From Dicyema japonicum (taxonomy: Eukaryota; Animalia; Dicyemida), in the NCBI GenBank assembly GCA_011109175.1, contig RDEW01000004.1, positions 1,176,410-1,240,409 of the forward strand: DNA of 64,000 nucleotides. Reading direction: 5' to 3'. The first letter of the stretch is position 1. Each line of letters starts with the position of its first letter. The notes under the pieces are model-generated. The model saw only the letters and a program-made list of their open reading frames with translations, did not search any database and was not told where the DNA came from. Below, piece by piece: positions 1,137-42,159 of this stretch. A program made the position numbers and the translations under genes.

Positions 1137-2658
1137 TTATAAAATTGTGGAAAATCTAATGTTCTTATTCGGATTAATTTTATGAACGACGAGAGCTGAT
1201 AGGTCGTTCAAAAAATTAATATTTTTCTTCAAACATTTATTCACAGATTCAGAAAAGTTGTCTGCCAAATCTTGATTGATAATATTTCCAACCTAAAATT
1301 AGTTTTAAATTAACATATTCCTTTAGTCCTGTGAAATTCTTGTTTTTCGCTAAATCATCTCTAGAATCCTCTTTCTTTCCGTTTCCCACAGCAAAGTGAT
1401 CCGTTTCATTACAAAAATCCTTAATCTGTGTTTGATTTACCACGGAAGGCTTTATGTTCTCAAAATCACTTATTTTTCTGGTTTCTTTCGTTTTATCAAC
1501 TTTTTTGTGCAAATTTGTGAGAATAGATTTTCTCACTTGGTCCGTAATGGTAGTTTCCATGTCAACAATCACGTACTCGTGGTCGTTTTCTATTCTTCCA
1601 TTATCCTCGATATCCTTTTTGATTGAAAGGTCGAAATTAAAGGGTTTTGTGGACTTTTGTGGCTGCCAATTTACAAAGCAATTTTGCTCCTTCGTTCTAC
1701 GGAAAATCATTAACTCTGTAAACTTTTTTATTTTAAGATATTTATCAATAAGCGGTAAAATAACTGACTTTTTCTTGGCTTTCTTCAAAAAGGGATGCTT
1801 CAATAAAAGGGAGGCTGAGGGTCTCTAAGAATATAAACCAAATCTGACATCTTTGGGGTCTTTATTCAAGCAAAGGTCAATAAATTGCTGAATTAAGGCA
1901 GAAAAAACAGAAATTGGGAGTTTAGGAGTGTCCCTCAAAGGGATGAGAAACAAAGCCTTCATTACATGCAGATTGTGAAATGGGGGATGACCTGTAGCCA
2001 TTTCTACGCATGTAATCCCAGTACTCCATATATCAACCTAATTAAATCAGAAATTGCTGCCTTGTAATTATATTCTGATTCTTTGATGATTTCAGGAGCC
2101 ATCCAAAGCGGGGTCCCAATGAAGGTATCAAATTTATTGAGAGTGTTTGTGAAGTTCCGACTGAAGCCAAAATCAGACAATTTCACATCGCCCGTAGCAG
2201 AAATGAGGACATTGGGCCGCTATAGTTCAAACTGGAAATTCTACATTTTATATCTCTGTGTATGATTCCGCAGTCGTGGAGATAAGCCAGTCCAGAGACA
2301 ATTTCCTTGCAGAATACTCCAATTTCATACTCTTTGAATATCCTCATTTTTATCATTTCCGAAAGAGTCCCTACTTCCATATACTCCATGACAATCCACA
2401 TGGTGGAATCCAGTCAATTCATAGACATATTACCTGTAGAAAGGCGTGGTAATATGTGACGATGTTGTTACATTTGCATTCCAACAAAATATTGATTTCG
2501 CTTTGGATATTTTCAATCTCAAAGTCGCCGAAATTCAAATCGACGATTTTCACTGCCACGTTTTTTTTTGAATTTTGTTCAACCGCTCGGTAGACTAAGG
2601 CAAACGAGCCTTGGCCAATTTTCTCTCTAAGTTCATAATTCTGAACATTCATGGCCAA
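1137..2658 (-). CDS. STE20-family (GCK-III/STK24-25-26-like) Ser/Thr kinase, 7 exons
   Basis: Motifs: GQGSFALV, VAVK, HRDIK-x-N, DFG, GTPLWMAPE, DIWSTG. Six tiny introns: 2411-2433 GT-TG, 2220-2244 GT-AG, 2038-2060 GC-AG, plus three GT-AG. There is one apparent extra base in the GGG at 2214-2216. Confidence 0.85.
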
Positions 2659-3569
2659 TTATTGAAAAAATTGCGCTTTGTGGAAATAAATAAAATACGA
2701 AATTAGCAAATAAACGCCAACGACGAAAATCTCGTCGTCACAAAGGAGTTAATTATTGCGGTCTCAGTTTTACCACAGAAAATATTCCTTTTTTACTGAA
2801 TTTAATCCTTTATAATAATTTCCAAACTGAAGGAACTATTATTGGGACACTATGACCTCAAACCAGTGACTTGATGCAGGACGAACAGATTACCCCTTAC
2901 CTTCGGAATCAATTTGATTGGCTAATATTTGGTTAAATCCGGTTTTATTTGATTTGAAAAAAATTAGGTTAATGTATTGATTATTTTAATTGCTGATTAA
3001 AACAATTAACTGTGATAGACCTAAGATAATCCTGTTCCATTGTGCCTGCGACGCTTGAATTCCTGAGTCGTCCAGATGCTGGTTATTTTCGCGAATCTCA
3101 CTTTGAGAGGCTGACTTTATTCTACTTTAATAAAAAATTTATCCCCAAAGATAATTAAAACAAAATTTATTTGTCAACAAATTCCCGCTAAATTTTTAAT
3201 TTTGTTAGAAAATACATACATTCTACACGTATTCTCCATAAAATTGATCAGCACACTTTATTGGGTTAGGCTTTGCTTTACCAAATTTCAACACACTTTA
3301 TTTTGTGTTTTATTGAAAATTTCTAGGTGAATTGATGTTTTGAGAAATTTTATCAATATCATTAACGTAATTGCATTATAATTACCTCAAGGTGTTACTC
3401 AATTACATTCCAACTGTACATGTAATAAAAAGGAGCTGATTAGAGTCTTTTATACCCCACGTGAAGAGTAACATAATCATAAAGTCAGTAGATTGATTAA
3501 GGAGACAATCTCAAAAACAGGAATCAAGGTTTGATAAGGAATAAGTTATGACGAAAGTTAGTTAATAGC

Positions 3570-5700
3570 ACTTCCGCGTTCCCATAAGCACGTAGGATGC
3601 CTAGGGGTTCGCTCGTGCCGTACACCCACTATCCTCCCAGTCAGCCTTCATCATCTAGCTCTGTTTCTCGCGCGTTTACGAATATCCTCAAGATCGTCTC
3701 CAGTTTTGAATTGACCGCCAATTCGTGCGTAATCGTTACTAAGGCAGAAGGGAAGCGTACATCTTAGCCGACCCCGAAATCCAATTCCATGATTTGAATA
3801 GTAATCTTCCATGATTTGATTGCAAGGAATCTCTTCATCCATTCTCAGAACATGTCCGAAAAGTCGCCAGCGTGAGGTAATTACTTCTCTGCTTATCGGT
3901 TTGCATTTACATAATTTGTAGAGTGTCGTTTTTGATAATCTGTGGCCATTTGATTCCCACAATTTTTCTCAAATGTGTCTAGTCTGTCAAGGTCAGTTTT
4001 TGATGTTCTTCATGTTCCCGAGTTATAATAGGACTGGTTGCATGAACGCGTTGTATAAGCGCATCCGAAGTTTAAGGAGATAAGTTTTCTGTGAGTCCAA
4101 ATACTCCACATGTTTTTCAGTGCACACGATGCCAACATCTTTCTACGAGCAATGTTTCAGCATCACCCAAAAACGAGCCGAGCATTTTAGTAAACCTCCA
4201 TTTCTCATCAATCCGTGTCGATGACCGCTTAATCGAAGTTAACTCTGTTTTTTCTGAATCGATCTTCAAAGACCACCTCTCCATCTACTGCAGTTCTTAG
4301 TACCTCCACATCCTCAGACACAAAATCGATGTCATCTGCATATATTAATTCCACAAAATGATTAAGTGACCCAATTCTTTTCTAACGTTCCTCAACGCAG
4401 CTTCCAAATAGATTGCAAAGAGAACTGGCGAAAGCGAGTCCCTTGCGGAATACCAATCCCGGTGGTGAATTTTTCCGAATAGCCCTTCCCCACTTTCACT
4501 ATGAGGCTCGTGTCAGCCAGCAAAAAACGCACAATCCTCAAACAGTCCTCATCAATTATGTTTGAGAACTTGCAGTAGTTTATCTCAGCAGACACAGTCG
4601 AATGCTTTCGATAAGTCGACTCCCAGAATATACATTGTTTTTCTGTACTTCTGACATATTGCCGTAAGCCACCGATGACTCCATACTATATCAGCGGTCG
4701 ATCTTCCTGGTCTGAATCCGCTTTGACTTGGTGACAAGATTGGTCAACTGAATTTGATATTCAATGTTGTAATCAACAATGTTTTTCGCAAAGTGGTCAA
4801 AAGCACGATCGGCCTGAGATTTTCAATTGGACCTGCAGTTTTGCCATGTTTTTGTAAAAAAGTAGAACTCCCATCGCGATGTCAATTGAAAAATGAGTCT
4901 CCTGAATATCGTTGAATATAAAGTATCTTTTCTGCTAACTGGGTTGGTGCGTATTTAAACAACTCTCCACAAATATTGCCATAGCCAGCTTCTCTGTTGT
5001 TATTCAGGCGAAGGAGTGCTCCGCGAATCTCGGAATCCGTAAACACGAGGCTGTCCTTAGAATTGTGGGAGAAGTAAAGTATTTTATCGATTGAACTGCT
5101 TGCTAAAGTGTTGGGCTATAAGTCCAGCAGAACGGTAGCGTCCAATACAAAGTGACCGAACTCATTTTGAATTTTTAAATTGGTTTTAGCTGACCCGCGG
5201 TTGAGTATACGCACAGCCATAAATATTTTTGCACCTGAAAGTAATCTTTCAACTTCCAGTCTTGATGAACGTATACAAACAATACATCGAGCCATGTTTC
5301 TCATATGCATGCGCCTCGTGGGGTCCGTCCATATCTTAGACAAATATGAGGAAAATTGAGGAAATGCAAAAGAGGGCTTACAGAGTAACGGAGCGTTGGA
5401 TTTGTGAAGATGTGCAAAGCCCATCCCATAATGACGTGAGTCAGATGGTAGTAGTATTAACCGGTAATTGTCATAGCATACATTTCGTTCTGTCACCTTC
5501 GTCACTTGCAGACATGCCACACCGGTTTTGTATCTTTCTAGATCCGTACATAGAATGTTCTGTTTGATGTTTGAGGCAATTCCTCCGACATTGAAAAATG
5601 TAATGGAAAAAAGCGTAGAGTGGATTGATCGAGAATACGATAAAGACATTACAATGAGAGTGATGTCAACCAACTCAACCAACACCGACGAAGTGTTACA
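3570..5700 (-). mobile_element. Degenerate RTE-clade non-LTR retrotransposon (APE endonuclease + RT)
   Basis: ORF 5116-5685 has an APE start (TFFNVGG...VACLQ...HYGMGF). RT remnants include 'GIPQG' and YADD-like text, and the RTE-type C-terminus is 'SRWRLFGHVLRM...FRGR'. The element is frameshifted. Confidence 0.85.
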
Positions 5701-5714
5701 ATAAATTATAATTT

Positions 5715-5870
5715 AAAGACCGTCGGTTGTCATGGACATAATGCCCTCTCGTGTAGAAGAAATGCAGGACGATTCCCGAGACACAAGGTGGTCAACGGAA
5801 TTGTCAAGCAAGCCTTAGAGTCTGTGGGATACCCGCCATACTCGAACTGCCCCTGTTCTGAGAAATAATG
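5715..5870 (+). mobile_element. CRE-type restriction-like endonuclease (RLE) domain fragment
   Basis: Plus-strand translation GHNALSCRRNAGRFPRHKVVNGIVKQALESVGYPAILE matches the CCHC/RH..N motif preceding the PD-(D/E)xK domain of CRE-like elements. Confidence 0.65.
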
Positions 5871-5945
5871 TCCTTGAAATGCCCGAGAGGTGATCATCAA
5901 GTCATCCACCGTTCTTACATCATCTTCAAAAACAAGTATGATAGC

Positions 5946-6038
5946 TGTTTGTCAGGGCAAAGGGAGTCCGTTAGCCGTCTAAGGGATTGGTTGCATGAGA
6001 CAGTTCTTGTTTAGTTGATGACCATCACTTACCTGCAA
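5946..6038. repeat. 93-bp direct repeat, copy 1 (probable target-site duplication of the RTE at 6039-7868)
   Basis: Identical to 7869-7962 except for one indel (gggattgg vs gggacttgg). Confidence 0.9.
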
Positions 6039-7868
6039 TTATATTATTATTTATTATTTAAAGCACTCCCGAGAAGTCATAAAATTAATCAAGCCTCCCT
6101 TGTGCCGTATTTCTAGCCATCCTCTCTATCAGCCTTTTCCAGGACCCTCTACTTCGTGCCAGTTCCCTTAAGGTATCTAGGTCGTCTGCGGAAGTGAGCT
6201 TCAGTCCCACAGCCGACAGGTCTCCATTCAAAATAGTTGGGAGTGTGACTCTTGGTCTTCCACGGAAACCGGCTCCCGTATGCATTAGGTAGTTTTCCAT
6301 GGCGATATTCGCGGGTACTTGAGCATTTAGACGTAAGATATGTCCAAAGAGACTCCATCTTGATCTGAAGATCTCCTCGGATAGTATACCAGATTTGCAC
6401 TTCGAGTAGAGGTCATTGTTTGAGATCTTCTTAGGCCACTTGATCTTGATTACTGATTTCAATTGTGTCCTGTGGAAAGCGTCAAGACGGTCCATCTCTT
6501 GTTTAGAGATTCCCCAAGTGCCTGAATTGTAGGTCAGGACGGGGATGACAAAAGCCTTATATATTCTGAGTTTGGTGTTTAATCCCATCCTCTTCTTATG
6601 ACCCCACATATTCGATACTTTCTTTAGTGCACACATTGCGAGGATTTTCCTCCGAGAAACATCTTCTGAGTCCCCGAGAAGCGAACCCACCTTCTTTTGC
6701 TTTCTCCAAGACTCGTCCGATCTTCGATCATTGCGTGTAAGTGTTGTGAACTCTGTTTTATCGGTGTTAACGGTTAAGAACCATTTCGAGAATACGTGTG
6801 GAAGAACGTTAAGCATGTGTTGAAGTACTTGAATATCCTCAGAAACAAAGTCCAGGTCGTCCGCGTAGATTATCTCGTTATAATTGTTGCCAACCAGGGG
6901 TCTGAACTCTCTTAGTGCGGCCTCAAGGTAGACAATAAAGAGGACCGGGGATAGTGAGTCCCCCTGTGGAACTCCACGTGAGGTCGAAAAAAAGTTAGAG
7001 GTAGAGTCACCAATTTTGACGGCAAGTTGAGTGTTCCGCATGAGTAAGTGTATTATTTTGACATCGTCAGGCAGTAGAAAACTCTCCAACACTTCCATAA
7101 GTTTTCCACGGTCCACCGAGTCGAACGCACGGGACATGTCGATACCAAGTATCTCAATAGATTTTTTGTATTTTTGGCACAGGGCACAATACCACCTGTG
7201 CCCCCATACCACGTCAGCCGTGGACCTGCCCGTCCGGAATCCACTTTGGCCGTCCGAAAGAAATATGTTCACCCTCTCCTTTATTCGGTTTAAAGCAATG
7301 AGGGATAATGTTTTTCGTATGGAGGTTAGGAGTATAATAGGTCTGAAGTTGTGAGGGGGGCCTTTACTTTTTCCCGGTTTTTGTAGTGGAATTAGCCACC
7401 CTTTTCCCAGTTCCAGTTCATCTGCACCCTCGAGAGACCGGTTGAAAATGTTAGTAATCATTTCAATTAGCTCCTCCGGGCCGTATTGTAAAAGTTCTGC
7501 AGTAATGAAGTCTGGTCCGGCAGATCTTCCGGTATTTAATTTTTTAATAGCTTGTTGAGTTTCGGATATGGTAATAGGGCTAGTTAGAGTGTACTTGTAA
7601 GACTTCCGAGATTTCATTGCTTGGTCAGCCGCGTCCTGTTTGTTGAACATAAGGTCAAAATGGGATGCCAGAACGTTTGCTTTGTTAATGGTTCCGATAA
7701 CGTCGTGACCAAGGTTGTCATGGACAGTTAACGAAATTGGACAGTTTTCTCTGCTAAGAAGCCGGATTGCTTTGAACATTCTTGGTCCGTTCTTGTACTT
7801 TAATATGTCTGAGATTTTCTCCTCAGCTTCATTTTTGGCAAGGAATCTTTGTATTTGTTTCTTTGTAT
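6039..7868 (-). mobile_element. 5'-truncated RTE-clade retrotransposon with intact RT ORF (564 aa, 6085-7779)
   Basis: RT motifs NFRPIILL, QSGFR, DMSRAFD, GVPQGDSLSP and YADD are all present, with an RTE-type C-terminus. A short 3' UTR ends in a TAA-rich tail. The endonuclease is absent and the element is flanked by 93/94-bp direct repeats. Confidence 0.95.
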
Positions 7869-7962
7869 TGTTTGTCAGGGCAAAGGGAGTCCGTTAGCCG
7901 TCTAAGGGACTTGGTTGCATGAGACAGTTCTTGTTTAGTTGATGACCATCACTTACCTGCAA
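7869..7962. repeat. 94-bp direct repeat, copy 2 (probable TSD)
   Basis: Matches 5946-6038. Confidence 0.9.
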
Positions 7963-8079
7963 CAAAATCAATATATGATAAATTTTTTAGTTAAAAATTA
8001 AATATTTTATTAATAATTTCCCACGATTAATTTTTTAATTTTTAGTAATGCTTTTGTGAGTTGTTGTGAGTACTACCCA

Positions 8080-9625
8080 ATACTCAAGAACAACAAAGCC
8101 TCCTCCTTGCCCTCTTCGTTCAGGCCAATTTCCTTAACATCTGTTGTCTCAAAAATCCTCGAAAGGATCATTCTTAACGAAATCACTCCCTACCTCGACC
8201 TCTCCGATTCATAACATGGTTTCCGTCCTTTACACTCGACCACCACGCACTTACTGACACTAACCCAATACATCTCCAACGGTTTCAACAACTGCAAACC
8301 CCCGGAACGAACTGTCTTGGCCTCTATTGACCTAACTAAAGCTTTCGACAGAATCTCCCGTGTGGTCCTCTGCAACAAGATCTATTCTACAAATATTCCC
8401 TCTGTATGGAAGTCATGGCTCACAAATTTCCTCTCGGGAAGACTGGGCCATACGTGTCTATATTCAAATATATCAAGATATCGACTCCTACCAAACGGTG
8501 TTCCCCAGGGATCAGTCCTTTCACCCTCACTTTTCAACCCTTTACGTCAAAGACATCCCAACAACCCAAAATACGTTACTATTGACATATGCGGATGATC
8601 TAGTAATCGCATCCAGGAGTGGCGATGTTCGACTGGCCACCGAAAAAGTGCAGTACCACCTGAACTTGCTATCCGACTGGATGAACTTAAACTGGATGAG
8701 TGTTTCCACCTCGAAGTCATCAGCTACCCTGTTCACAACCGATCGAAGACAATTCAACCTAAACCCCACACTCTCGTTGGGAGACGAACCACTCCCCTTA
8801 AATAAATACCCGAAGATCCTTGGAGTTGTCTTCGATCCTTCACTCTGTTTCAACAGACAAGTGGAGGAAGTAATGACAAAAGCCAAGCGGAAACTTAACA
8901 TATTACGGGCAGTAGCTGGCCACTCAAACGGTCAGCAAAAAGAAAACTTAACTCTTCTCTACAAACAGTTCATCAGGACTACACTCAACTACGCCTCACC
9001 AAGTTGGGCCCCCTCAATCTCCTTGTCCCTTTCTCAAGAACTGCAGAAAGTGCAAAACTCGGCGCTGAGAATAATAACTGGCTGCTTAAAGTCAACCCCC
9101 ACCGACCATTTACATTGGGAGTCGAAAATCCTCCCGCTCTATGACCACCTGGAAATGCGTAATTTACAATTCCTACGGCAGTCGTTCGACCCGAATCACC
9201 CAGTTCACGCTCTGCTAAGTAACAATAACCGCAGATACATACGCAGGACCCTCTTTGACCTACAAAGAGCCTTGTCGAAGATCACCCCCCTCAAGAAGAC
9301 TCAACTTGGACCCGCCGAATCCATGATTTCATCTCGACACGGGCCATTAGGACACTTCAATATAACAAAGTCTTGGAGCGCTTCCCCCCTGATATCAGTC
9401 CAACGGAACAATCGCTCCCGAGGAAGATCAGAATCGGACTGGCTCGCCTACGATGTGGACACCACCCTTTCCTGGCTGGCAGAGTAGTTCGGGACCTTTT
9501 TCCCTGCCCTGGACCACCGGATGCAAAAGTCGAGGATCTCTGGGAGCGGCCTGTCCGGACTGCACGCTCTCTGATGGTCGCCGGCTTCCCACTTGCTGGC
9601 GAAGCCGGGGTTAATAATTTAATTT
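8080..9625 (+). mobile_element. 5'-truncated LINE (APE-RT type, I/Jockey-group-like) RT and C-terminus
   Basis: Motifs IDLTKAFD, GVPQGSVLSP, YADD, KILGVVFD, LYKQFIRTTLNYASPSW and RIGLARLRCGHHP. One frameshift occurs near 8540. The element ends in ggggttaataat. Confidence 0.9.
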
Positions 9626-9699
9626 GTTGTGAGTACTATTCATGGTGGCGCTCAGTGTAGAATAACACTAAAAAGAACCATTTGCTCTTCCCCACCCAG

Positions 9700-11900
9700 A
9701 CTCCTTATGCCTGGATGGTATACCTCAACTGGAAACTCGAGATGTTGTTTGTTTCCCCTGGATTCTACTGCTTTCTGGAGATATTGAACATCTTATTCTA
9801 ATCAACATTTACATTCCACCGCCGGGATCCTGTCCTAATAACTATGTTCCGAAGCTCGACAAACTACAAGAAATTCGAAATGTGTTACTATGTGGGGATT
9901 TCAACGCCAAACATCCCCAGTGGCTCAGTACCCAGTCGGCAGACAAGAGGGGGAGTCTAATTATTGACTCTCGAAAAAAAATCTGAATTACCCGAACATC
10001 TTCACAAGGACACCAGTCCGAAGAAATGACAACTCAACCTCCCCCTATATATCCTTTGCTTCTTCTAGGATTGCCCCGAAGATTTCATGGAACGTCTCCT
10101 ACGATTTTCATAGTGATCATAATCCGATTATATTAAAACTGAGCCAATTCAATAACTCACGTAGAATTAAAGCAACCTTCAAGGTCTACAAGAAAGCTGA
10201 CTGGTCGAATTTCAAGCTCTTCATTGACCATAACCTAATACATTTTGATCCCACCTCATTTTGCTCCATCGACAAACCAGTGGATCATCTAAACCATGTA
10301 TTCCTTCGAGCTGAAAAGTTGTTTGTATCACCCACGTACAGTTTACAAATCTTACAAGCCTACTCTGGACTCGGACACTCGTCTCCTCGTCAAACAAAGA
10401 AACTCCCTGAAGATGAATCATCAGCAAACCTCTTCTGATTTGGAAAATATAAAATGCTTAAATCAGAGAATTACAAAACTCATCAGAGAAAAGAAGGATC
10501 GGGCGTGGAATCGCCTATCATCATCTATTGGACACGTGAAATCCACGAGTCTAAAACCAGGAAAACCGAAAACCTTACCTTCTTTCTTCCGAAAAATTTC
10601 ATTAACGTGCGTCAACAGATCCCACCCGTGAGGCGACGAGTCCTTCTGGCACGATACAGTTGTTAAAAGGGATCTTCCTACCTTTCTCTCTGACCAAACC
10701 CTCTGATGAAGATTGGATTATGAAAACTATTCCGCTAAAGAGTGAAGTGATGTCCGCGGCGGTAGGACGTGGGACAAAAATGGAAAAGCCTGTACCTACT
10801 TCTCCATTTCTCTTCGGAAGCGGAAACCTGTAATGAAGTATTGGAAGATGGATTTGGTCGGCACAAGCAGACGTTCTCCCTTTGGTGGTTCCTTGGATTA
10901 GTTAGTTATGATTGTTTGTGCTGGGCTTACAATGGTAAGCCTGGGGTTAATAATTAACGTGCGCATTATCGCGCCTAATGGAGAAACTCGTACTATGGAA
11001 AACTAAACCCCATTTGCCCGACTGTCACTTTCGACATGGTTTCAAATGTGAGCGTTCAACTACGACACGTTTGACCTCACTGTCTCAATTTATATCAGAA
11101 GGGTAAATTTTATGTTTCTCACATTAGTCTCTATTTTAATTATGAGAAGGGTTCAACGAACCGAAACGCCATCTACCGACAATATTGGTCTCCCTGGACA
11201 TCAGAAGGCGTTCGAATCTGTCCCGAGAACATTATTCACGAAAAAGGTTTTTGACACCACCATTCAGCCGGCTTTGAAAAGATGGATAGCCAATTTTCTT
11301 TCCGAAAAGAGGAGGTGTCTGTATTGTCCATGCAAGATCGAAGTCCCGTCTTCTACCAAATGGCGTCCCTCAAGGATCGCTCCTCTCTCCGGGGTTATTC
11401 AATTTATTCCTCAACGATTTACATTGCCCTGGAGGATCAGATTCAATGCTTCTTACATATGCTGACTACTTGATTATCGCTAGCAGGAACAAATACGTGG
11501 ATATGGCAAAATCAGAGCTTCAGTCAAATATTGACGACCTGGGAGCCTGTTGAAGTTGAATCGTCTCTCCATATCCAGGGATAAATCAACGTATACTATC
11601 TTCACCACAGACAGAAAAGAAAAATATACAATGGACTTGAACATATTTGGAGACTTTTTACTATTAAAGATTCATCCAACTATCTTGGGAGTGACATTTG
11701 ACCCTTTGATGACATTTTCTCAACATGTGAAGAACGTTATAACAAAGGGTCTCAGGAAACTGAATATAATGAAACCTCTCTTAAAGTCCAGGCCGTCACG
11801 GGAATGCGATGTCGTCTGTTCAATCAACTTCCCAAACCGACGGTAGAGTATGCTTGTGCCTCATGGGCCTATGGAGCTTCAATATCCAATTCATACAAGA
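9700..11900 (+). mobile_element. Degenerate LINE (EN + RT) interrupted by a nested insertion
   Basis: EN motifs NIYIPP, GDFNAKH and SDHNPI are present. Removing 10612-10963 restores the RT1 motif 'FRKISLTCALSRLMEKLVL'. Downstream RT remnants follow (ILGVTFDPLMTFSQHV). Confidence 0.8.
10612..10952 (+). mobile_element. LINE 3'-end insertion (~340 bp) with 11-bp TSD
   Basis: TSD attaacgtgcg occurs at 10601-10611 and 10953-10963. The same sequence family is at 36790-37140 and 38290-38380. It ends in ggggttaataa. Confidence 0.85.
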
Positions 11901-12780: not shown

Positions 12781-12841
12781 ATGATTGAAAGGTTGAAATT
12801 ATTTATTTAAAAAAAAATAAATATTGATAATACTTTTCGTG

Positions 12842-20739: not shown

Positions 20740-23190
20740 TGTACAGACCACTCTCGGAACTATTATTATTGCCAATGTCTATGTTCTCTCTCCAGGTTCC
20801 TGTGCAAAAGAATTTTCTATGGATTTGTCTGCCCTAGATATGATGGAAAACTTGTTGGTGTCCGGGGATTTTAATGCCAAGCACCCTTCGTGATATGAGA
20901 AACAACCTCCCGACACAAGGGGATTTCATATTATTTCCCAATTAGACAATCTGTCCATTATGAACGACCTAAATAGGAATACACGAACTCCGTATAATAG
21001 AAAGGATTAGATTACCTCGCCGGATATAACGTTATGTTCACCACGGCTTGCCCGCTTATATGCTGATCAGTAAATTATGACTTACGAAGCCGACCAGTGC
21101 CCAGACCATAATCCCATTATGATCAATTGTACACAAATGACGCGGTAAAAACAAGTAAATTTTATGACTATTTTAATGCTGACTGGACAGGATTCAGAAG
21201 ATACGTGGATTCGTCCCTATTTAATTTCCATCCAAATAATTTCAACTCAATCAATAGAGCAGTCTATCATTTTAATAAGGTGATTCTGGAAGGGTGAAAA
21301 CTATTTGTCAGAAAAGGAATTTTAAAACTCACCGAGAAGAAATATGATGCTAGCACAATCAAACTAAGAAAAAAAAGGAATTGTCTCAAACGTAAAAAGC
21401 ACCTAATAAAACATGATAATAATAGAATCCGTGCACTGAACATTAAGAACAACGAAAAGACAAAACTTCTCCAAAAAACAAAACTGGGCCGAATTTCTAA
21501 TCCTATGAAAAACAATTGTTCACTTACCAAGATGTGCTGCGAAATGTCAATAACGCTAAAAACAATACCGAGGGAGACCGTGAACAAAAGATTGATCTGA
21601 ATAAATTTACAAACATTTTCTGAGAATAAGCCACAAACCATATCAAAGGATAGATATTCCTACACACAAAAAACCGAAATCGAAAAGGAAGTATCCAACA
21701 ATGTATGTTCTACCGGGAGATGTCGGACTGTGAACAAAAGATTGATCTGAATAAATTTACAAACATTTTCTGAGAATAAGCCACAAACCATATCAAAGGA
21801 TAGATATTCCTACACACAAAAAACCGAAATCGAAAAGGAAGTATCCAACAATATATGTTCTACCGGGAGATGTCGCTTTGGAAATCTATCGAACAGAGAA
21901 CACCATTCCTATGGACCGGAAGGGATCCCGATTATTCTGTTGAAAAATATGGGCACAGTGGGAGTATCAGCACTAACATGCATCTTCAACTACTCAATCA
22001 ATTTCAACTGTATTCCAGCTATATGGAAATTTTCGAATATTCATCTAATACTGAATCCTGGGAAACCAAGGGAGGATCCTGCTTCTTACAGGCATTTGTC
22101 GCTCTTGTAAGTCCAGAGAAGATTCCTAGAGAGGATGGTTATGACACTCATTTACGCCAGATATAAGCATGGTTTAAAAAGGGAAGATCACTATCACACA
22201 TCTAAATACATTAAAGGAGTCCATAACAAATGGCCTTAACAAAAGACCAGGACAGAAAAAAACGATTGTATGCTCAATTGATATACAGATGGCTTTTGAC
22301 TCTGTTTCGAGAAAAATTATCACGCACAACATATATTCGTTAAACATTGACGCAAACCTGGTTGGGAAATTTTTTTAGTGGTCGACGAGGACGAGTACAC
22401 TGTGGCAATCGGTGTTCCGTATCAAGACTATTAGCAATTGGCGTTCCTCAGGGCTCCCCGTCATTTCCCCTTTTGTTTAACCTTATGATGAATGACTTGC
22501 TACTCCCACAAAGGGACGATGACATATTATTAACGTATGCGGATGATATAGTCATTGGTTCGAGGAATGTGAGTATTATCGAAGCAACGAGAAGAGTAAA
22601 GGACAATCTGAATAAACTTAGTTTATGGCAATGGGAAAATCAATTGACTGATAGCCAGGAGAAGTCGGTGTTGACCCTATTCACACCAAACAGAAGACTA
22701 GGGATAATATCAATTAACGTCACACTGGATGGGAAAAATATTCCGCAAAACAAATTCCAAAAAATCCAAGGAGTTACCTTTGATACCTTAACCTTTACAA
22801 AACACGTCGAAAATATGTTATTGACTTGTAAGAAGATAATCAACTTCCTGAAGGCGTTCTTGGGAAACCCAAGATACAAAAAAGATTTGAGTGGACTGGA
22901 TGTCATACACAAACTGTTCATCGAGTCTACAATAGGATACGCATGTAATATCTGGGAATCTAACCTTGCTGCAACGAATTTGGACAAGATCTGCAATATT
23001 CAAGTGAAGGCAGCAAACCTACGAAGGAAATCTTCCCGTGTGAAAACCTGCCCAGAAACCTTGAAAATATGATAGAGGCGACTGGAACAGTGCCCCTGAA
23101 GGACTCGAATATGCGGACCCCGTCCATTTCAAGGAGACTCATCAACTACTATAATACTGTTGAAAATTTAATGTACCATTAGTATTCATT
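20740..23190 (+). mobile_element. Near full-length degenerate LINE (EN + RT)
   Basis: EN motifs NVYV, GDFNAKH and HNPI are present, as are RT motifs GVPQGSP, YADD and GVTFD. There are many frameshifts. A close relative lies at 44580-45560. Confidence 0.85.
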
Positions 23191-25760: not shown

Positions 25761-25789
25761 AAGATAATTAAACTATTTAAATCAGTAAA

Positions 25790-27360: not shown

Positions 27361-27799
27361 TAAGCATACTGATCCAGAGGACATTATCGAGAAGTTGAGG
27401 TTGATGCTAAAACTCGTTACCAGGGAGGGAAATTGTCTCCCAGGGAATGAGTAGATGGATCTTTTTGAATGCCGGCCAGGCGTCTCCTGAGTAAGGTGGA
27501 TCCAATGACGCCACCAGAATAAGAGAAATCTTGAATCAATTAGTAATATGACACCACGTGGCCTTTTAATTTAAATTTAGCTGTTATTCTTCACTGTACG
27601 TCATCGATGGAAATAAGGTCAGAAATACTGTCATTTCCATTATTTTATAAGAGAAATCTTGAATCAATTAGTAATATGACACCACGTGGCCTTTTAATTT
27701 AAATTTAGCTGTTATTCTTCACTGTACGTCATCGATGGAAATAAGGTCAGAAATACTTCATTTCCATTATTTTATTATTTCATTAACATTAATTACTGG

Positions 27800-29546: not shown

Positions 29547-29669
29547 CACACCGAATTATAAGTTATACAAAAACTAATATTTATTAAAGATAATATTAGA
29601 TTCAAAATTATTTTTAATAATTAAAACAGATTAAAAATAATTAATAATTAAAACAGATTAAAAATAACA

Positions 29670-31990: not shown

Positions 31991-32329
31991 CGCTATTGTC
32001 TTTAAATAAAGTTGCTTATGAATAAATCAGACCTTTACGCGAGCCATAATACTTATAGCCTCTCAAAAAATACGATGTCAACCTCTTCCATTCTCTCAGA
32101 TTGTTAGGTATCGGTCGCAATAATTCTAAGTTTATTTAAGTGTTTTTAGGTCATTTCTTATGATAACTGGCAGTTACTTATACTTTCCACGAAAACGGCC
32201 TACCTGGTACGCAATAGCTTTTCATGGTGGGTAGACATATTATTACTGCATCCAATCCTAGTCTCTTGTAGACTGTCAATAGAAATATCACATCTCTCTA
32301 GATCAGGGTCCCCTAAAGCAAAATTTAGA

Positions 32330-32920
32330 AAATATCGTCTCTGTATTTTTGCTGACTGAAATAGACTTGATAATATTCTGTGGAGGTTGGTGCATTAATG
32401 AGGTCGACACTTCTCGAATTGATGCCATTATAAGTTCTCCCGGATTGTGTGGGGCGATAAGCAGTCGACAAAACCATCATAGCCACGTTTATTATCAATT
32501 GGAAATATTTTCTCTAACTTTTTTCAGTAGTTTTTCTAAAAACATCCAAGGTTCGTTAGATGAACCTATTTTTATAAATAGACCAATCTTTTGTAATCTT
32601 TCAATCTGGAAGATTTTAGCATCGTTTGCAAACGCTGTGGAGCATATAAAGAATACCACAATGATTTAGCTAGCGTGATTTTAATGTACTCACTTTCCAT
32701 TGTTAGGGAACCTCTGAGACACCGAGAAAAAATGACAAGAGAAATCAAACTATTAGGTGATCCAAGTCCTCCTGTTAAAATATATAAATTTTTATCCCCT
32801 AATTGTAGTTCACATCGGTCCCTGACAACGATTAACTCGTAAACGCCTACTTGAAATTTCCAATTACCCACTTTGGGAAACCCGCTGTAGAAAGTATCTT
32901 TCTCGACGTGGCCTTTGTCA
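32330..32920 (-). CDS. Probable multi-exon gene of unknown function (exon structure unresolved)
   Basis: Open frames are separated by intron-sized GT..AG segments (e.g. gtgagtacattaaaatcacgctag) and one possible GT-TG segment at 32496-32518. No recognisable domain. Confidence 0.35.
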
Positions 32921-33204
32921 TACTAAGGAGCTTTAGGCAGAAACGAGACACGTCATCACAAAAATAAAAGTTTGTCAAAAATATTTTTCAATTTAATAAG
33001 CAACCGCTATATAACCGTTTACTCTCTTTTCGTTCTTAATAAAAACAATTTTATATTAAAAAATTTTTAATAAGCAAAAATTGAGATGGATTACGAAAAA
33101 CCTCTTAAAATGCTAATTTTCTTAACAGTTCCTGATTACAGTTTAGTAATGAAAATTATATAACCGATATTTTCCTTTCAACAATAAACCATTAAAGTTA
33201 AGTG

Positions 33205-33710
33205 TTAAATCCTCGGAGTTCCTGTCCCGTAGTCAGCTCCACTAGCAATCCTAATACTATTCATCATTTCCTTTTCACTTATATCATTTTTATCACTGGC
33301 TGTCTTTTCGATTGCATGAGGCTAGTTTATATAAAGCTGAGAATACAGAAAAGTGATTTGACAGTATTGGTCTCTGATGAATCACGTTTCCCTTTTCTTT
33401 AATCTTTGAGCGATTTCCGATCCACGTAATGAAGGCAAACTTTGTCCTTTTACTGAGCTCATCCCCCGTAAGAAAGCACACGTAGCAGTACAGAATCATT
33501 GAATCTGTACTTTTTAGCAAAAATATTAACCATCCAGAGAATCAAGAAAATCTTGATAAGATGATCCAGTTTTTTCAATACAGAGTGTATTTAGACTGTC
33601 GAATCTGGTAGTTATCCTGGAAGTAATGAAATCAAATACCAATTGATACTATGATCGCAGTCCATTATTTGATCTTTTATAATTTTCATTTGAGGGGTAA
33701 AATCTACCAT
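33205..33710 (-). CDS. COTL1: Coactosin-like protein (ADF-H domain), 4 exons
   Basis: Contains YVCFLTGDELSKRTKFAFITWIG and ends ASGADYGTG. Three GT-AG introns of 23, 26 and 25 nt give a continuous frame. Confidence 0.85.
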
Positions 33711-34499
33711 ATTCTGCTGATTTTTAGCGATAATCGCCGAACGTTAATATATGTAATTCTAAACGTCGATAAATGCTAATTTAGTAATAAATTAAGTTGT
33801 ATTAATAATAAAAATTGTCCATTTTTGGCTCAAAGGAAGGCTCAACTGAATATTTAAAACATTTGAGGAATTTAAGACTTAGTTCAGCATAATCAGTGGA
33901 ATTCTCTTCACTGTCAATTGAAGAGAAAATTGTCAGCAAAATGGTCAATCTACTTACTTAGTGGTCAGCTGACACCGCAATCGAATCTAAAACAATAAGT
34001 CCCTGATAAATCACTTCTATATTAAGATGAGATTATCTTCCATTAATTCTTAAGTTCCAATTCAGTCAAAATACTTGCTAAACTACCACTTTTTGCTAAT
34101 GATGGCAATTATATGTCATTTCATACAATTCTCGAGATAAAGTCTTTCAACAGCGGCCTGACTGCATGGCAGTTCCCTCTCGGGAAGGTGAGCGATAAAT
34201 AACCACAGTGCTTACGGAAATCTGTTTGTGCAGAAATCAGATTCCCTAGACGACCAAAGAATTCCAACGTCGCGTAATTTGCCCCAGATAATCTGAAAAT
34301 CAATTTTTAATATATTAGATTTTAGTTTTCCTAATGAATTAAATTGTTGGGGGAGTATTCGATTGATCGAGATAACGGTAGTTTACTGGTCTTTCCGCAA
34401 TCACCACCAGATGATTTAAAACTCCTGACAATCCGGCCTACAGGTTTTGGCTATACATAAAAGAGGGTCATATTAACCCTCTGCAGTAAAGTTCATTTT

Positions 34500-35300
34500 C
34501 TTAGAACCATTCAGGAAACTAAGACCATTTGTATCTCAAAAGGATCCATGACTGGGTTTCTACTAATGTCATCGAAAGCCTTGTATCATAAAGGAACGTC
34601 TGCCGCCTAACTTTGACAGAAGCAAAGCTTATCAAAGTAAGCATGTTACGGTCATCATATGGCTTAACAGGACTATATTGAAAAAGTCTGTCAATCGGTT
34701 TCATCGCTGTGCCTGTTTTTAAGACGATCACAAGACGGGCCTTCTCTTAGTCCGCCTTTGATTTCTTCGTCAGATATATCCAACTGATCTCTGGGATTGT
34801 GTGCTTTTGGCTGTTACTTTTCTGTTAGTCTGCTAACTTGAACAGACTGGAGTAAATAAACAACGCTCAGTTGATTAAATTCTTGGGGGACTTTAAGCTG
34901 ATGGCTTCTCCTCTCAAACTCAACACTAACAACATTTTTCCATTGATCTGATACCACCAAGGACGAAACATTGAAATGAAAAAATATAAAACCCAAAGTT
35001 GGTAATTCGTCTTCCTGGCTATTAAACCATAGGGCATATCGGAACAAAATTCCATCCCTCTTTATTTAGAAAAAGGTGAAATAGTTGGTAATTGTTTTTA
35101 AGGTCCTGTAGTGAAAAATATCCAAAGCAAAAGAAAACCGATTAGTAAAAAAGTTCCCTTCTCCAATCGTATTCATCTGCAAAAATGAGAGAAGGCTCTT
35201 TCTTACGGTAGTCAAAACAATGAAAGGCCACATGTTGGAGGAAGCAGTTATTTACTGGAACTGGGATCACCTAATTGTTTGACGTATTTTCTGTCTTTCA
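34500..35300 (-). CDS. Possible multi-exon gene, unidentified
   Basis: Coding-like open frames (e.g. DQWKNVVSVEFERRSHQLKVPQEF, PRDQLDISDEEIKGG) are separated by short GT..AG segments. No complete model could be built. Confidence 0.3.
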
Positions 35301-35489
35301 TTCTGCGATCCTGGAGTCCTAGATAAATAAACACGCAGGAATAAAAGCCATTTTGGTCTTAGAACCCACAGATTTCAGTTGGGACTGCCCCAGAAGCTAA
35401 GTATCAGTTGGTATAGTGAATTATCCTTCACTCATATATTAAACATTTAAGGTGAGAAGAAAAAACAAACAAGGACGATAAAAACAAAA

Positions 35490-36443
35490 TCACATATTAT
35501 GTGGTTGAGGGAATCGATCAGGAGGAAAGAACATTCCAGGAGGATACATATATCTCATATCAGGAGGTCCAGTGGGCCGTAACATCGGAGGCACATCAGC
35601 AAACATCGTATGCGGACGGTCTGTCTGAGTGAGGGGGTTTTGAGCTGCTAGTATCCGCTCAGCCACGGAACCGTGTCGTTCACCTTTCACGTCCTTCTTG
35701 AAGGCGTAAGAGATCGTTATAGCTCGATTGCACAGATATTGACCGTTCATGGCCTCAATGGCCGCATCCGAGGACTCGAAGCTGGCGAAATTGATGAAAG
35801 CGTACCCCTTAGATATTCCCGTGTCTGGGTCTCGCATAATCTAGCCTTACTTGACTAATATTACCTTAGGCTGTTGCATAATCATTCCAAAGGCCCCGAA
35901 AGTGTCGTGAATCAATTTCTCGTCCACTTCTGGCGCCAGATTTCCCACGAAAATGTTAGCTCCGACGTCGAGGTTCTTTGCATGTGCAGAGGCCTGGGTT
36001 TGGCAGAAAATAAGTTACTTTATTGACTTTTATGGGTTTTCCGTTGAGTTTTATCATACTCATTATTTTGACAGCGTAATCGGCGTCCTCCTCGCTCATG
36101 AATTCTACAAATCCGAAACCCTAGTTACTTTATTGACTTTTATGGGTTTTCCGTTGAGTTTTATCATACTCATTATTTTGACAGCGTAATCGGCGTCCTC
36201 CTCGCTCATGAATTCTACAAATCCGAAACCCTGATGTCTTCCGGTCACTCGATCCTTTGGAATGTGCACATTTACTAAAAATAGGAAGCATAAATTTTAC
36301 CAATAGGTCCCGTCTGGAGAAATAACTCCCATAATATAGTTTCGTTTATTTTTTCATCCAGTCCCCCGACATAAATTGTTGCATCAGATCTTCAATTAGA
36401 CAGCAATACCTTGATTTCTCTCGGTGACAGGACCAGTAGCCAT
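35490..36443 (-). CDS. SF3B4: Splicing factor 3B subunit 4 (SAP49/Hsh49), 5 exons
   Basis: [11 protein letters not shown]|[12 protein letters not shown]..., two RRMs, and [18 protein letters not shown]. Intron 1 (36385-36409) is GT-TG; the other three are GT-AG. A 110-bp duplication (36013-36231) interrupts the assembly. Confidence 0.95.
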
Positions 36444-36789
36444 AAGGCACCACAAGGATAGAAAATTTAAAATTAAAAATAAATATTTAATTTTCCTTAT
36501 ATATTTATATTCAAATTTCATAACATTAAAGTGGTTTAATGACAATCGAATGTTAATCAACACCGAAAAATTTTTACATCTCTTTATCAACACCGAAAAT
36601 CTGGCCTTCTGGCTGAACGTACCTCTGATGACATCGGATCTGAGTTAATCAACACCGAAAAATTTTTACATCTCTTTATCAACACCGAAAATCTGGCTTT
36701 CTGGCTGAACGTAACTCTGATGACATCGGATCTGAAAGTGTGGGTTCGAATCCGAAAGATTGAATTTTCAGCGAAGGAAAATTCTTATC

Positions 36790-38810
36790 AAAAAGATCCC
36801 ACCCGTGAGGCGACGAGTTCTTCTGGCACGACACAGTTGTTAAAAGGGATCTTCCTACCTTTTTCCCTGACCAAATCCTCTGATGAAAATTGCATTATAA
36901 AATCTATTCCGCTAAAGAATGAAGTGATGTCCGCGACAGTAGGACGTGGGACAAAAATGGAAGAGGGTGGACCTACTTCTCTACCTCTCTTCGGAAGCGA
37001 AAGCCTGTAATGAAGTATTGGAATATGGAATTAATCGACACAAGTAGATGTTCTCCCTTTGGTTTCTCCCTTGGATTAGTTAGTTATGACTGTTTGTGCT
37101 GTGCTTACAATGGTAAGCCTGGGGTTAATAATAATAATACCTCGGACAAAAGATTGTCGAACAGGACAATAGAAGTTACTAAGGATGGAAGAGCATTGCC
37201 GTTCAGCAAATGGCAAAAAATATTGGGTCTGACTTTCTATACGCACATGAACTTCACGAGACACGTCACTAACGTGCTGAACAAATGTGATAAGAAAATC
37301 AACCTTCTGAAATGTTTAACAGGTCTATGGAAAATTGGACATACCCTATACTTTAAACGCTCTACTCACAGTACATCGAACCATGCATTTCATATGCGTG
37401 TACTTCATGGGGACCACTGGCCTCTTATACGAACATCCAGAAAATTTCCGCAACTCAGAAAAGGGCCTTCAAGCTAACGGAGAGATGGTACACAGGGGAA
37501 AACANACTGACCCACCCAAACCGCCGCTAAGAAAACCGAAAAGGGATCAATTAACTTATTTCACGGAAAAGGAGGTAATAGCATCCCTAAACCAAACAAA
37601 AGTAACACATTCTCATGGTCCAGACGGAATTCCCATAATCCTCCTGAAAAACATAGGAAATGAGGGATTTGGTACTCTGACCAAAATCTACAACTGGTCG
37701 ATTGATTATAACTCAATCCACGATATGGAAACTTGCAAACATTCACCGAGGATTGAAGCCAGGAAAACCGAAAGAAAACCCAGCTTCCTTCAGGCCTATT
37801 TCTCTCTTATGCTCCATGTCAAAAATTCTGGAAAATCTTATCCTCGCAAAAATCACTGAAAGAACTTCCGATAAACCATTCCAGCATGGTTTCAAAACGA
37901 GCTTCCTCACATCCCTGACTAGCTTTATTAGCTCTGGATTTCTGTGCAAGCCAAGACACCAGAAAACTGTTATGCTCACTAGACGTCTACAAAGCTTTCG
38001 ACTCTGTGCCGAGGAAGAACCTAATATGGAAAATTTACCAATCAGATATCCCTGAAAACCTCTAACGCTGGCTGATGAACTTCCTTAGCGGACGAAGAGG
38101 TAGAGTGTACATTGGAAACATTCACCTGTCTCTCGTTTATTCCAAAGTGGAGTACTCTAGGGCTCGCCGCTATCACTATTACTATTCAATCTGTTTATGG
38201 CTGACATTCCGACGCTGAATTGAGAAGACAACCTGCTTTGACTTATGCAGACGATATAGTCTTAGCCTCACGGGATCAGAACACCCAAACANTCTCCCTT
38301 TGGTTTCTCCCTTGGATTAGTTAGTTATGACTGTTTGTGCTGTGCTTACAATGGTAAGCCTGGGGTTAATAATAATAATACCTCGGACAAAAGATTGTCG
38401 AACAGGACAATAGAAGTTACTAAGGATGGAAGAGCATTGCCGTTCAGCAAATGGCAAAAAATATTGGGTCTTTACGCACATGAACTTCACGAGACACGTC
38501 ACTAACGTGCTGAACAAATGTGAGAAGAAAATCAACCTTCTGAAATGTTTAACAGGTCTATGGAAAATTGGACATACCCTATACTTAAAACGCTCTACTC
38601 ACAGTACATCGAACCATGCATTTCATATTCGTGTACTTCATGGGGACCACTGGCCTCTTATACGAACATCCAGAAAATTTCCGCAACTCAGAAAAGGGCC
38701 TTCAAGCTAACGGAGAGATGGTACACAGGGGAAAACATCAAATAACCGACGCCCATGGAGAAACTAATCGAAAAAAAACAAGAATGGACACCAATGCCAA
38801 AAAGGTAGCC
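36790..38810 (+). mobile_element. Cluster of LINE fragments, including a duplicated junction
   Basis: A LINE 3' end with (TAA)n is joined to a second family at both ~37140 and ~38380. RT fragments (LKPGKP..SFRPISLL, QHGFK) lie between them, and there is an n at 37505. Confidence 0.8.
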
Positions 38811-39650
38811 CCTTTCTCCGGCGTTTTTTAACATATTCTTGCGACTTATCCTTCCCTGGATGACCTAATTCAATGCTTCTAAAATATGCTGACAATTTAA
38901 TCACTAAACAGATATGTGGATATGGCAAAATCATAACTTCAGTCACACCTAAACGATCTGGGGGCTTGGCTGACTTTGAATCGAATTTCCGTGTCAACAG
39001 AAAAATCTTCATATCCCATTTTTACCATCTACCAGAGACAAGGATACACTAGAAATCAACTTTTATCGCGATATTATTACCATGCAGAGACATCCAAAAG
39101 TACATCCTATAATAGGGAGGGCCCGTGGACTCTGCTCTCTTTTTCCCAACATGTAAAGAACGTTCTGGTAAAGTAGAGCTTCCGGAAACTCAACATTAAC
39201 TTTAACAAACTTTATTAATAAAAAAAGTAAAGCAAAGAGTAGAACTAAATGTGTGAACCCAGTAAGAAACGGTGGCTGATTCGAACCCACGGGGAGTGAT
39301 TAAATAGGCAACTCTATTGGCCGTGTAGTCGATTGATTATGAAACAGTTAATACAATCCTATTAGTGTATNGGTAAAGTAGAGCTTCCGTAAACTTAACA
39401 TTAACTTTAACAAACTTTATTAAAAAAAAAGTAAAGCAAAGAGTAGAACTAAATCTGTGAACCCAGTAAGAAACGGTGGCTGATTCGAACCCACGGGGAG
39501 TGATTAAATAGGCAACTCTATTGGCCGTGTAGTCGATTGATTATGAAACAGTTAATACAATCCTATTAGTGTACAATCACTGTGTTTGTTAATCTAAATT
39601 ATGTTAATATTAATATCATTAGTATTCATTATTAGCTATTATTTGTTTTT

Positions 39651-42159
39651 CTAAACCATATTTTGATCCAAGTTTTCATCATCCTGCTTTTCTCCATTCT
39701 TTGACTTGTTCTCTCCAGATTCTTCACTTTCATTCATTTCGTCATTTAATGGAACATCCTCGTTCGAGGGATTCTGACTGGTTGGAGCTTCCGTATTTTT
39801 CACATCCTGGTCGCTGTGACTCTCGTCTTTGTCTTGAGAAATCTCAGGTGATTCTTCTGCCTCAGTATTAGCTAAAATTCTAATTTATTCTGTACAGTTC
39901 TGAGATTCCTTGATGCATTTTAAATATGTTTCGAATTGTTGGGAATTTTTAATGCAGAACATTCCATTGAAGCCATTTTCTCTCCCATAATGCGCGCGTA
40001 TACTGAAATAGAACGGAGATAAACCTGCTTGGAGCTTCATTTCTTGCTGTCTCCAAATCCTCAGGACCAGCGAGTTTCTGTAACTCAGATATTGCGTCTA
40101 TTTTGCTCACCACAACACACGTCATTATTTTACTGAGCAAATAATTATTCCATAAACCCGGATATCTCGTCGATGAGATCCATGTTAACTTCTTCGCTAA
40201 ATATAAGTTTCAGGAGATCCTCAGTCCCCCTGAAGCTGATAGATTCATGAACAGTAAACTGCTCATCTTGTATCCTTCCCATGATGGAATCTAATTCTTA
40301 GTCTACCAAACCGACCTTGATTTTCGTCGGACAAAATAATTGCCAGGGACTGTTGTATTGGAAAAAAGTACTCAATTTCCTTATCAGCTTCAGCCTGCGA
40401 GCTTGAACCGTGGATTAAGTTGATGGGGACATCATTGAGTTTAAATTTTGCGCGTAAACTTATATTAAGAAGATGAGAACCAGCCAGGGTCAAAATTGGC
40501 AGCATTTATTTTTGGGCCCAATAATTTGCGCCACTCAGAAACTGAGTTATTCTTTTCCAGAATAAGAGCCATTGAAACTCCAGAGGTCATTTTTTCGATT
40601 AGAGTCTCATAGTGGTCCTTTCCCTTTTGGTTTTCATAAAAATCTTCTGCTTGGTTTCTCGACAATTGGATTTCTTTACTCGCAACAACTTTGAATCCTT
40701 GCTGTTGAATGTCAGAGAGGATTGAGTCTGCCCATAACTGAAAAATCAAAACCCTTAAAGTTTGCGACCCCATCAGGCCGAATAAGTGCAAGAGTATGAT
40801 TATTTTTGGACGAAGTATCATCTTGGGAGCCGATTTGAAAGTCGGGGAAGAAATACGAAAGTTCACTGTGGGCTTCGTATTCGTCTGAACTGCCATGGAT
40901 TGCGTTGATGAGTTTACTCTTTCCATATATTGCCCGCACACAAAATAGTTTCACATATTTTACCTGTTGGGCTCAGAGGTTTTAGCTTCCTCCACGTTTT
41001 TGGGACCAATAATTTTACGGATTTCGTTGATGACGTTGGAGTCGGGGGAACTTTTATTTTACCTGTTGGGCTCAGAGGTTTTAGCTTCCTCCACGTTTTT
41101 GGGACCAATAATTTTACGGATTTCGTTGATGACGTTGGAGTCGGGGGAACTTTTTGAAATGGCGAGAATACAGCTTATTCCACTACAAATGTACTCAATT
41201 ACGTCATTGTAATATTCCTATATGAAATATTTTACAATATAAACCTCTCCTTCTATGTGGGTGTACAACTGGCGGGCTTCGACCTCAGTAAGTTGACGAT
41301 CTTCTCGTTTGAGAATCTCTATTCCGGAACTTGTACTCAATTACGTCATTGTAATATTCCTATATGAAATATTTTACAATATAAACCTCTCCTTCTATGT
41401 GGGTGTACAACTGGCGGGCTTCGACCTCAGTAAGTTGACGATCTTCTCGTTTGAGAATCTCTATTCCGGAACTTTTAATCTAAAGTAATTTCAACTTTAA
41501 ACAATTTCAAGTATTTCGTCCAACTTTCCTTGCTGAATGACGTCCGGTTTGACGATAGCCACAGCCACAATTTTGTTGGCTAAGTAAATAAATAGGATAA
41601 CTATGATCCGTTGTAGCCGATTCTGTTTTCTCCACCTGCACGGTCTTTATGTTGGGATCTTTGATCTAACATAGATAACATAGTGGATCACTTCTTTTCT
41701 GACAATGTCTCCACTAATCACCTTGTGTTCTCTTTGTAGCTCGTCCACGATCATTTTACTCAATAACGGGGCGTCTAGTCCCCTCTTTTGAGCTACCAGA
41801 GTTCCTCCCTCTTTTATTGATTTATAATTACAGCATAAAATAGAAAACAAGGCTGGCAACGACCTCTGTAGTGAACGAGCGAATCAACAGTGTCTGATTT
41901 AGCCTAATCTTTGTTGAACTAGACTCTATTTAACATACCACGGCAAATTGTAGTAAATCATCTCCCAATTCATTTTTGATTCTCTTAAAGATGCTCTCAA
42001 TCGCGATACATGGTTGACACCAATCCTGATAAACGTCCACAACTAAATACCCTTTATTGTAATTTATCAACCACAAAGTCCAGGCTTTGAGAGCATAGCA
42101 TTCCAATCTTCCTGATTGTCGATTGGTATTCTTAACTGGGTTTCTCTTTTTCTTGCCAT
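39651..42159 (-). CDS. NME8: Thioredoxin domain + three NDK-like domains (NME8/NME9, TXNDC3/6; dynein IC1-like), about 15 exons
   Basis: N-terminus MARKRETQLRI..VVDVYQDWCQPC..YRGRCQPCFLFYAGG, then NDK blocks IVKPD, VRAIYG..NAIHGS, LIRPDG and LRAKF..NLIHGS. Fourteen introns of 19-35 nt, one of them GT-TG (40941-40963). Duplications lie at ~40956-41152 and 41190-41475. NME8 versus NME9 is not resolved. Confidence 0.85.

Follow-up and report, generated by a model that had tools for sequence, protein, structure and literature searches.

Putative TG acceptors in micro-introns of three conserved genes of the dicyemid Dicyema japonicum

The window analysed here is a stretch of 64,000 nucleotides of the Dicyema japonicum genome (assembly GCA_011109175.1, contig RDEW01000004.1, positions 1,176,410 to 1,240,409 of the forward strand), and all coordinates below are counted from its first letter. 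The host genes in the window are interrupted by introns of about 24 nt. In three of these genes, coding for a STE20-like protein kinase, for SF3B4, a protein belonging to the U2 small nuclear ribonucleoprotein (snRNP), and for an NME8-like protein (thioredoxin/NDK), one intron starts with GTA and ends in TG. The GC content of the window is about 37%; for D. japonicum a GC content of 36.7%, the shortest introns among the bilaterians and 49% repeats have been published.

All three genes are located on the minus strand. The protein kinase gene (1249..2652) encodes the motifs GxGxF, VAVK, HRDIK, DFG, APE and DIWS, all of them present, and the Pfam Pkinase matches on four of its exons cover profile positions 1-249; its last exon is 191 codons long and open in AT-rich DNA. 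The SF3B4 gene (35490..36443) encodes two RRMs and has four introns, of which the other three are of the GT-AG type and 24-26 nt long. The NME8-like gene (39651..42159) has 14 introns, 13 GT-AG and one GT-TG.

The kinase GT-TG intron, the first of the STE20-like gene, reads from 2433 to 2411 on the minus strand. It is 23 nt long (GTAATATGTCTATGAATTGACTG), lies in phase 0 between CTACAG and GATTCC, and contains no internal AG; its removal joins AFLQ to DSTMW. The SF3B4 GT-TG intron, also the first of its gene, reads from 36409 to 36385 on the minus strand, is 25 nt long (GTATTGCTGTCTAATTGAAGATCTG) and in phase 1, and is flanked by AATCAAG and ATGCAA, its removal giving ERNQ/DATIY. In the NME8-like gene the intron reads from 40963 to 40941 on the minus strand; it is 23 nt long (GTAAAATATGTGAAACTATTTTG), in phase 2, preceded by CCCAACAG and followed by TGTGCG, again without an internal AG, and its removal gives SEPNS/VRAIYG. 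A sequence-only reading of this DNA had placed three introns ending in YTG at these positions, and the letters were found to match on the minus strand.

The donors of the kinase, SF3B4 and NME8-like introns are GTAATA, GTATTG and GTAAAA, and their last three bases CTG, CTG and TTG, that is, YTG in each case. Shifting the boundaries by one base would leave the mRNA unchanged and give introns with the ends GG..CT or TA..GG; GT..TG is therefore the only version of the boundaries with a normal donor.

The protein sequence is continuous across the introns. In the kinase, residues 6-71 of the 73 encoded by exon 1 correspond to Pfam Pkinase positions 1-67, which puts the end of the exon at about position 69, and residues 2-55 of exon 2 correspond to positions 71-125, with the start of the exon at position 70. 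The two exons abut at Pkinase 69/70 and therefore no residue is lost or gained by removal of the 23 nt. The spliced N-terminus of SF3B4 (39 aa) aligned without gaps to residues 1-39 of human SF3B4 (E = 6e-20, PDB match), a colinearity that was obtained only by removal of exactly 25 nt. The exons on either side of the NME8-like intron correspond to Pfam NDK positions 77-97 and 101-134, and the junction TSEPNS/VRAIYG has a spacing which we take to be that of NME7-type domains. The claim of the sequence-only reading that TG acceptors restore the conserved proteins is borne out by the kinase abutment and by the gap-free SF3B4 alignment. From this colinearity we infer that the TG introns would be removed from the mRNA at the boundaries given above.

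Retention of the intron would lead to a stop within 1-5 codons in all three genes (after VICL in the kinase, GIAV in SF3B4 and R in the NME8-like gene). The exons located 3' of the TG introns are intact and conserved: they carry the catalytic motifs of the kinase, both RRMs of SF3B4 and the NDK motifs.

Alternative AGs were looked for around the three sites. The kinase and NME8-like introns are free of AG, and the nearest AG downstream lies 22-27 nt away. For the kinase, AG next occurs 50 nt from the 5' end of the intron, in frame, and its use would delete DSTMWIVME; for the NME8-like gene, the next AGs are at 45 nt, resulting in a frameshift, and at 47 nt, in frame with deletion of VRAIYGKS. 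The expectation that the next in-frame AGs would delete conserved motifs thus held in both genes. In SF3B4, AG is absent between 21 and 80 nt, and an internal AG is present at nt 19-20, 5 nt upstream of the TG; its use, giving a 20-nt intron, would shift the frame. The earlier statement that no usable AG exists is accordingly kept for the kinase and NME8-like introns and is not strictly valid for SF3B4.

The window was parsed with a small Viterbi gene finder, the codon table of which was trained on the three TG genes and then on the host genes found, after removal of duplicated copies. Nine host genes were identified (kinase, DnaJ, DEAD-box helicase, SAP-domain-like, coactosin-like, SF3B4, NME8-like, cyclin and pyrroline-5-carboxylate reductase), together with many fragments of long interspersed nuclear elements (LINEs). 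Curation of the introns of the nine genes yielded a set of 43, composed of 39 GT-AG, 3 GT-TG and 1 GC-AG introns, TG amounting to about 7%. The proportion reported earlier, 3 of about 56 (about 5%), was based on the same three TG introns; with our own denominator of 43 it becomes about 7%.

Human TG acceptors represent about 0.02% of sites (PMC2374985), and at this rate the probability of at least 3 in 43 is 1e-7. All minor non-canonical splice sites of animals taken together amount to 0.58% (PMC7072748), for which the same probability is 2e-3.

When all 16 acceptor dinucleotides were allowed at equal cost, the gene finder produced 10 spurious non-AG introns in transposon regions. These were spread over 7 dinucleotides, with TG occurring once, and are therefore considered noise. 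In the host genes the same finder needed non-AG acceptors only at the TG sites and at one site in the kinase. The TG intron of the NME8-like gene was chosen by the finder under these settings. In the kinase the finder preferred a 20-nt GT..GA intron, which was rejected: it adds one residue, while with the 23-nt TG version the protein follows the Pfam profile exactly. Other settings were discarded. Very lenient intron penalties resulted in over-splicing, including, in the cyclin gene, a false TG intron by which the cyclin-C motif would be lost; a self-trained finder converged on transposon open reading frames (ORFs), and a flat score gave wrong frames. A count of ORF junctions in the window made with no coding model yielded noise, with AG not enriched.

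Intron length was 22-26 nt in 36 of the 43 curated introns, with a median of 24 nt. The TG introns (23, 25 and 23 nt) are placed in the middle of this peak, and are also typical in their GTA donors and in their AT content (0.64-0.78), which resembles that of the AG introns. Their predicted folding energies (-2.4, -1.0 and -0.6 kcal/mol) fell inside the range of the AG introns, giving no indication of a hairpin. The donor motif of the whole set consists of GT followed by A or T and little else (GT in 42 introns and GC in one), and the acceptor shows T or C at position -3 in 33 of 43 and G at position -1 in all 43.

An internal AG is skipped in 22 of the 40 AG-ending introns, and the rule of taking the first AG that lies 22 nt or more from the 5' end identified the correct 3' site in 34 of 40. 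These data fit a placement of the 3' site by distance, in which AG would be preferred and YTG tolerated. The idea of a distance-based choice had been proposed in the sequence-only reading; the lengths, the skipped AGs and the 34/40 rule agree with it, as a fit and not as a proof.

The published D. japonicum assembly was obtained by merging Platanus contigs with unpolished PacBio Falcon contigs, followed by GapCloser and HaploMerger, for a genome with 1.24% heterozygosity. A part of the window around SF3B4 and the NME8-like gene was compared with read-derived contigs from four sequencing runs, all of DNA type with introns retained. In runs X1, X2 and X4, Illumina-derived contigs that cover at least 36306-36635 show no alternative letter at 36385/36386. 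As the contigs of three runs agree, the TG of SF3B4 is not a consensus error, and the check in genomic reads suggested with the original prediction is thereby answered for this intron. The sequenced sample is probably the source of the assembly, so that the agreement speaks against an error at this site but not against a peculiarity of the strain.

Over 35900-36700 and 38860-39640, contigs and window differ at 36446 (G>C), at 36549 (A>G), in a cluster at 39049-39100 and by indels at 36621/36623 and 39132. The total is about 12 mismatches in about 1,265 unique bases plus a few indels, or about 1%, in line with either the heterozygosity of 1.24% or assembly error. At 39880-41850, within the NME8-like gene, contig depth was 0 in all four runs, yet 85-87% of the words of the gene were present; filtering, and not deletion, is the most likely cause.

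Tandem Repeats Finder detected ten near-exact two-copy tandem duplications of 92-229 nt, at 21576-21875, 27519-27775, 36013-36232, 36552-36735, 39166-39573, 40956-41154, 41190-41474, 42113-42342, 47731-48180 and 51301-51532. Four of them are inside SF3B4 and the NME8-like gene, and several fall in exons of these two genes, where the reading frame would break. In both duplications that were tested, of 110 nt and 204 nt, the read contigs skip one copy; for the exact 110-nt duplication in SF3B4 (36013..36232), the contigs of X1, X2 and X4 pass directly from 36012 to 36123. These two are assembly artefacts, and the ten together look like products of gap closing. An exact 99-nt duplication (40956..41154) has its edge in the first 8 nt of the NME8-like TG intron. 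The intron is continuous within the right-hand copy, and the reading frame meets a stop if the duplication is real. This duplication is probably a gap-closing artefact as well, because two similar ones are missing from the read contigs and GapCloser was part of the published pipeline.

The kinase gene presents a further irregularity at its second intron (2220..2244, minus strand), where removal of a 25-nt GT-AG intron shifts the frame by one and 26 nt would be needed. On the Pkinase profile, the last position of exon 2 is 125 and the N of exon 3 falls on 128, so that two residues are expected between HRDIK and this N. With one C fewer in the CCC run of GGCCCAAT at 2214-2216 the product reads HRDIKSANVL, a normal STE20-type loop, and an assembly indel, that is an extra C in GGCCCAAT, is the likeliest explanation. 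Alternatively, the frameshift may be real, or there may be a second odd boundary of 26 nt, TG..AG or GT..GC. A 23-nt GC-AG intron follows (2038..2060, minus strand; YNYK/VDIWS), the only one with a GC donor among the 43; it is flanked by exon 3, ending at Pkinase position 176, and exon 4, starting at 178. The introns of the kinase are hence one GT-TG, one problem intron, one GC-AG and GT-AG, odd in three of four or five. The intact catalytic motifs and the 191-codon last exon argue that the kinase is not a dead gene. The earlier description of nearly intact exons is right for the motifs, and has to be corrected for the 1-nt frame problem of the kinase and for the duplications in SF3B4 and the NME8-like gene.

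TG is probably a working, and often the only, acceptor of these introns in Dicyema. This reading has to be weighed against three others. The TG could be an artefact or a minor allele, the true or common sequence being AG and the TG resulting from assembly error or from a rare haplotype. The merged and partly unpolished assembly, its heterozygosity, the disagreement with read contigs including several indels, the 1-nt problem of the kinase and the tandem duplications in SF3B4 and at the NME8-like TG intron would all be in agreement with such an origin. It is nevertheless very improbable: the SF3B4 TG is found in contigs of three runs with no other letter, and if the whole mismatch of about 1% were error and one in three changes were A>T, error would account for only about 0.14 such changes at the 43 acceptor A's, as against the 3 seen. 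Random errors would also strike other splice bases, and produce other substitutions, equally, whereas each of the three shows A>T at position -2.

The TG could also be real and not work, in genes that decay or give unproductive RNA, the function being provided by another copy or isoform. The kinase, with its TG intron, its frame problem and its GC-AG intron, is compatible with decay, and in human TG is never the sole acceptor (PMC2374985). We consider this unlikely, since the motifs for catalysis and binding are intact and long exons have stayed open (the 191-codon last exon of the kinase among them), SF3B4, an essential, single protein of the U2 snRNP, has a read depth like that of the neighbouring unique DNA, and the same single defect would have arisen in three independent genes, the other 39 acceptors of the parsed set being perfect. 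A last possibility is that TG is a weak or regulated site which depends on an AG for the first step, as in human AG-TG tandems, with no general relaxation of 3' site recognition. The AG 5 nt upstream of the TG in SF3B4, and the human precedent of a distance-limited AG dependence, speak for it. The tandem model fails, however, for two of the three introns, because those of the kinase and the NME8-like gene lack an internal AG and the next AG is 22-27 nt downstream; as an account of the three introns it is quite unlikely.

Several points weigh against the view that TG is a working acceptor. Three introns in nine genes are a small sample, and confirmation from reads covers one of the three, that of SF3B4, where the upstream AG means that the TG is possibly not independent of an AG. 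The case is made from DNA and from protein colinearity. The mismatch of about 1% between contigs and window and the artefactual duplications lower the quality of the assembly, and the frame defect at intron 2 of the kinase indicates a gene that is either imperfectly assembled or decaying. A second, AG-bearing copy of the TG genes may be present elsewhere in the genome. A search with the lineage-specific last exon of the kinase against 1.84 billion protein representatives did not find a match to itself; transcript-derived Dicyema proteins seem to be absent from the collections searched.

If TG is a working acceptor, the three introns would be ordinary U2-type micro-introns of a dicyemid in which the penultimate base is T in place of A, and which are cut in vivo at the TG. 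The 3' cut would be set mainly by the distance from the 5' site or from the branch site, and would fall at the first suitable YNG in a narrow window. AG would be strongly preferred, and a few per cent of introns would manage with YTG as the sole acceptor. The final G is kept invariant, and U at position -2 would be the mildest change. In spliceosome structures the 5' G is the pairing partner of the 3' G, and the branch adenosine is contacted by the base at -2, which may be the reason for TG being the non-AG ending that survives. Since two of the introns have no AG nearby, recognition at the first step would be independent of AG. The relaxed 3' site recognition proposed in the sequence-only reading thus agrees with the presence of TG in the DNA of conserved genes and with the distance fit, and splicing at TG itself is the part that is deduced.

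A broader form of this proposal, to which we give about an even chance, is that the major spliceosome of dicyemids no longer needs the A of AG. A ruler of about 22-26 nt from the 5' site would then define the 3' site, YTG would be the sole acceptor in about 5% of introns, of the order of a thousand across the genome and in essential genes such as SF3B4 too, and U2AF35 and the second-step factors would be lost or divergent.

TG acceptors have been described in human, where each of them is an alternative to a nearby AG and none serves as the only acceptor (2007, PMC2374985), the neighbouring AG being thought to license the first step via U2AF35. The Dicyema introns resemble these sites in their GT donor, their U2-type context and the replacement of AG by TG with the final G kept, and the SF3B4 intron, like the AG-TG tandems, has an AG a few bases away. 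They differ in frequency, about 7% of parsed introns, and in that two of the three lack an AG within 20 nt; in addition, the AG of SF3B4 breaks the frame and the kinase and NME8-like introns have no internal AG, which sets them apart from the tandem class.

The introns belong to the same animal group and size class as the dicyemid micro-introns described before (Ogino 2010; Lu 2019, PMC6736024; Zverkov 2019, PMC6543705), and myxozoan micro-introns (PMC13644364) are also of this size class. The GT donor, the narrow length and the AT-richness of Dicyema U2 micro-introns were all found in the three TG introns; the 3' AG was not, its place being taken by CTG, CTG and TTG. A 2026 survey described weak 5' and 3' motifs in D. 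japonicum, and in the literature on dicyemid and myxozoan micro-introns we found no report of non-AG acceptors in dicyemids.

In tunicates (Oikopleura, Fritillaria; PMC13326754, PMC7072748), too, the major spliceosome processes numerous introns that depart from the GT/AG rule, and this mass non-canonical splicing has been tied to a divergent U2AF function. In the tunicate type the donor is not GT (GA, AG and others), whereas here donors are canonical, GT in 42 and GC in 1 of 43, and only position -2 of the acceptor is altered, in a few per cent of introns. U12-type introns are likewise a rare class that can carry non-AG ends. The donors of the three TG introns, GTAATATG, GTATTGCT and GTAAAATA, do not conform to /RTATCCTT, the branch box TCCTTAAC is absent, TCCTT occurs in none of them, and 23-25 nt is far below U12 sizes.

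Few signals in eukaryotic genes are as constant as the AG that closes an intron. If about one in 20 introns of Dicyema does end in TG with no AG, distance can largely determine which 3' site is chosen, and the animal would provide a natural system in which to study how AG is read, whether by U2AF35, Prp8, Slu7/Prp18 or the RNA-RNA contacts of the catalytic core. Dicyema would also be the first animal in which obligate GT-TG introns form a regular class. By default, TopHat and AUGUSTUS model canonical sites only, and TG introns would escape them. The published Dicyema gene models were produced with these two programs; because such tools are restricted in this way, genes with TG introns, SF3B4 among them, are probably mis-modelled or scored as missing in the published gene set. 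Such errors would feed the claims of gene loss made for the reduced Dicyema genome.

Elsewhere in the window, Rfam and tRNA scans did not find small nuclear RNA or other RNA genes, and SF3B4 is the sole spliceosome gene. A gene for an ADF-H/coactosin-like protein is located at 33205-33710 on the minus strand; it has three GT-AG micro-introns and was recovered by the gene finder only at low thresholds. The region 36700-38800, between SF3B4 and the NME8-like gene, is a very high-copy repeat with a summed word depth of 10^4-10^5, compared with a few hundred in the unique flanks. It shows many joints and loose ends, and, within the part of the window compared with the contigs, is the only segment that was present in the small 2017 run X5.

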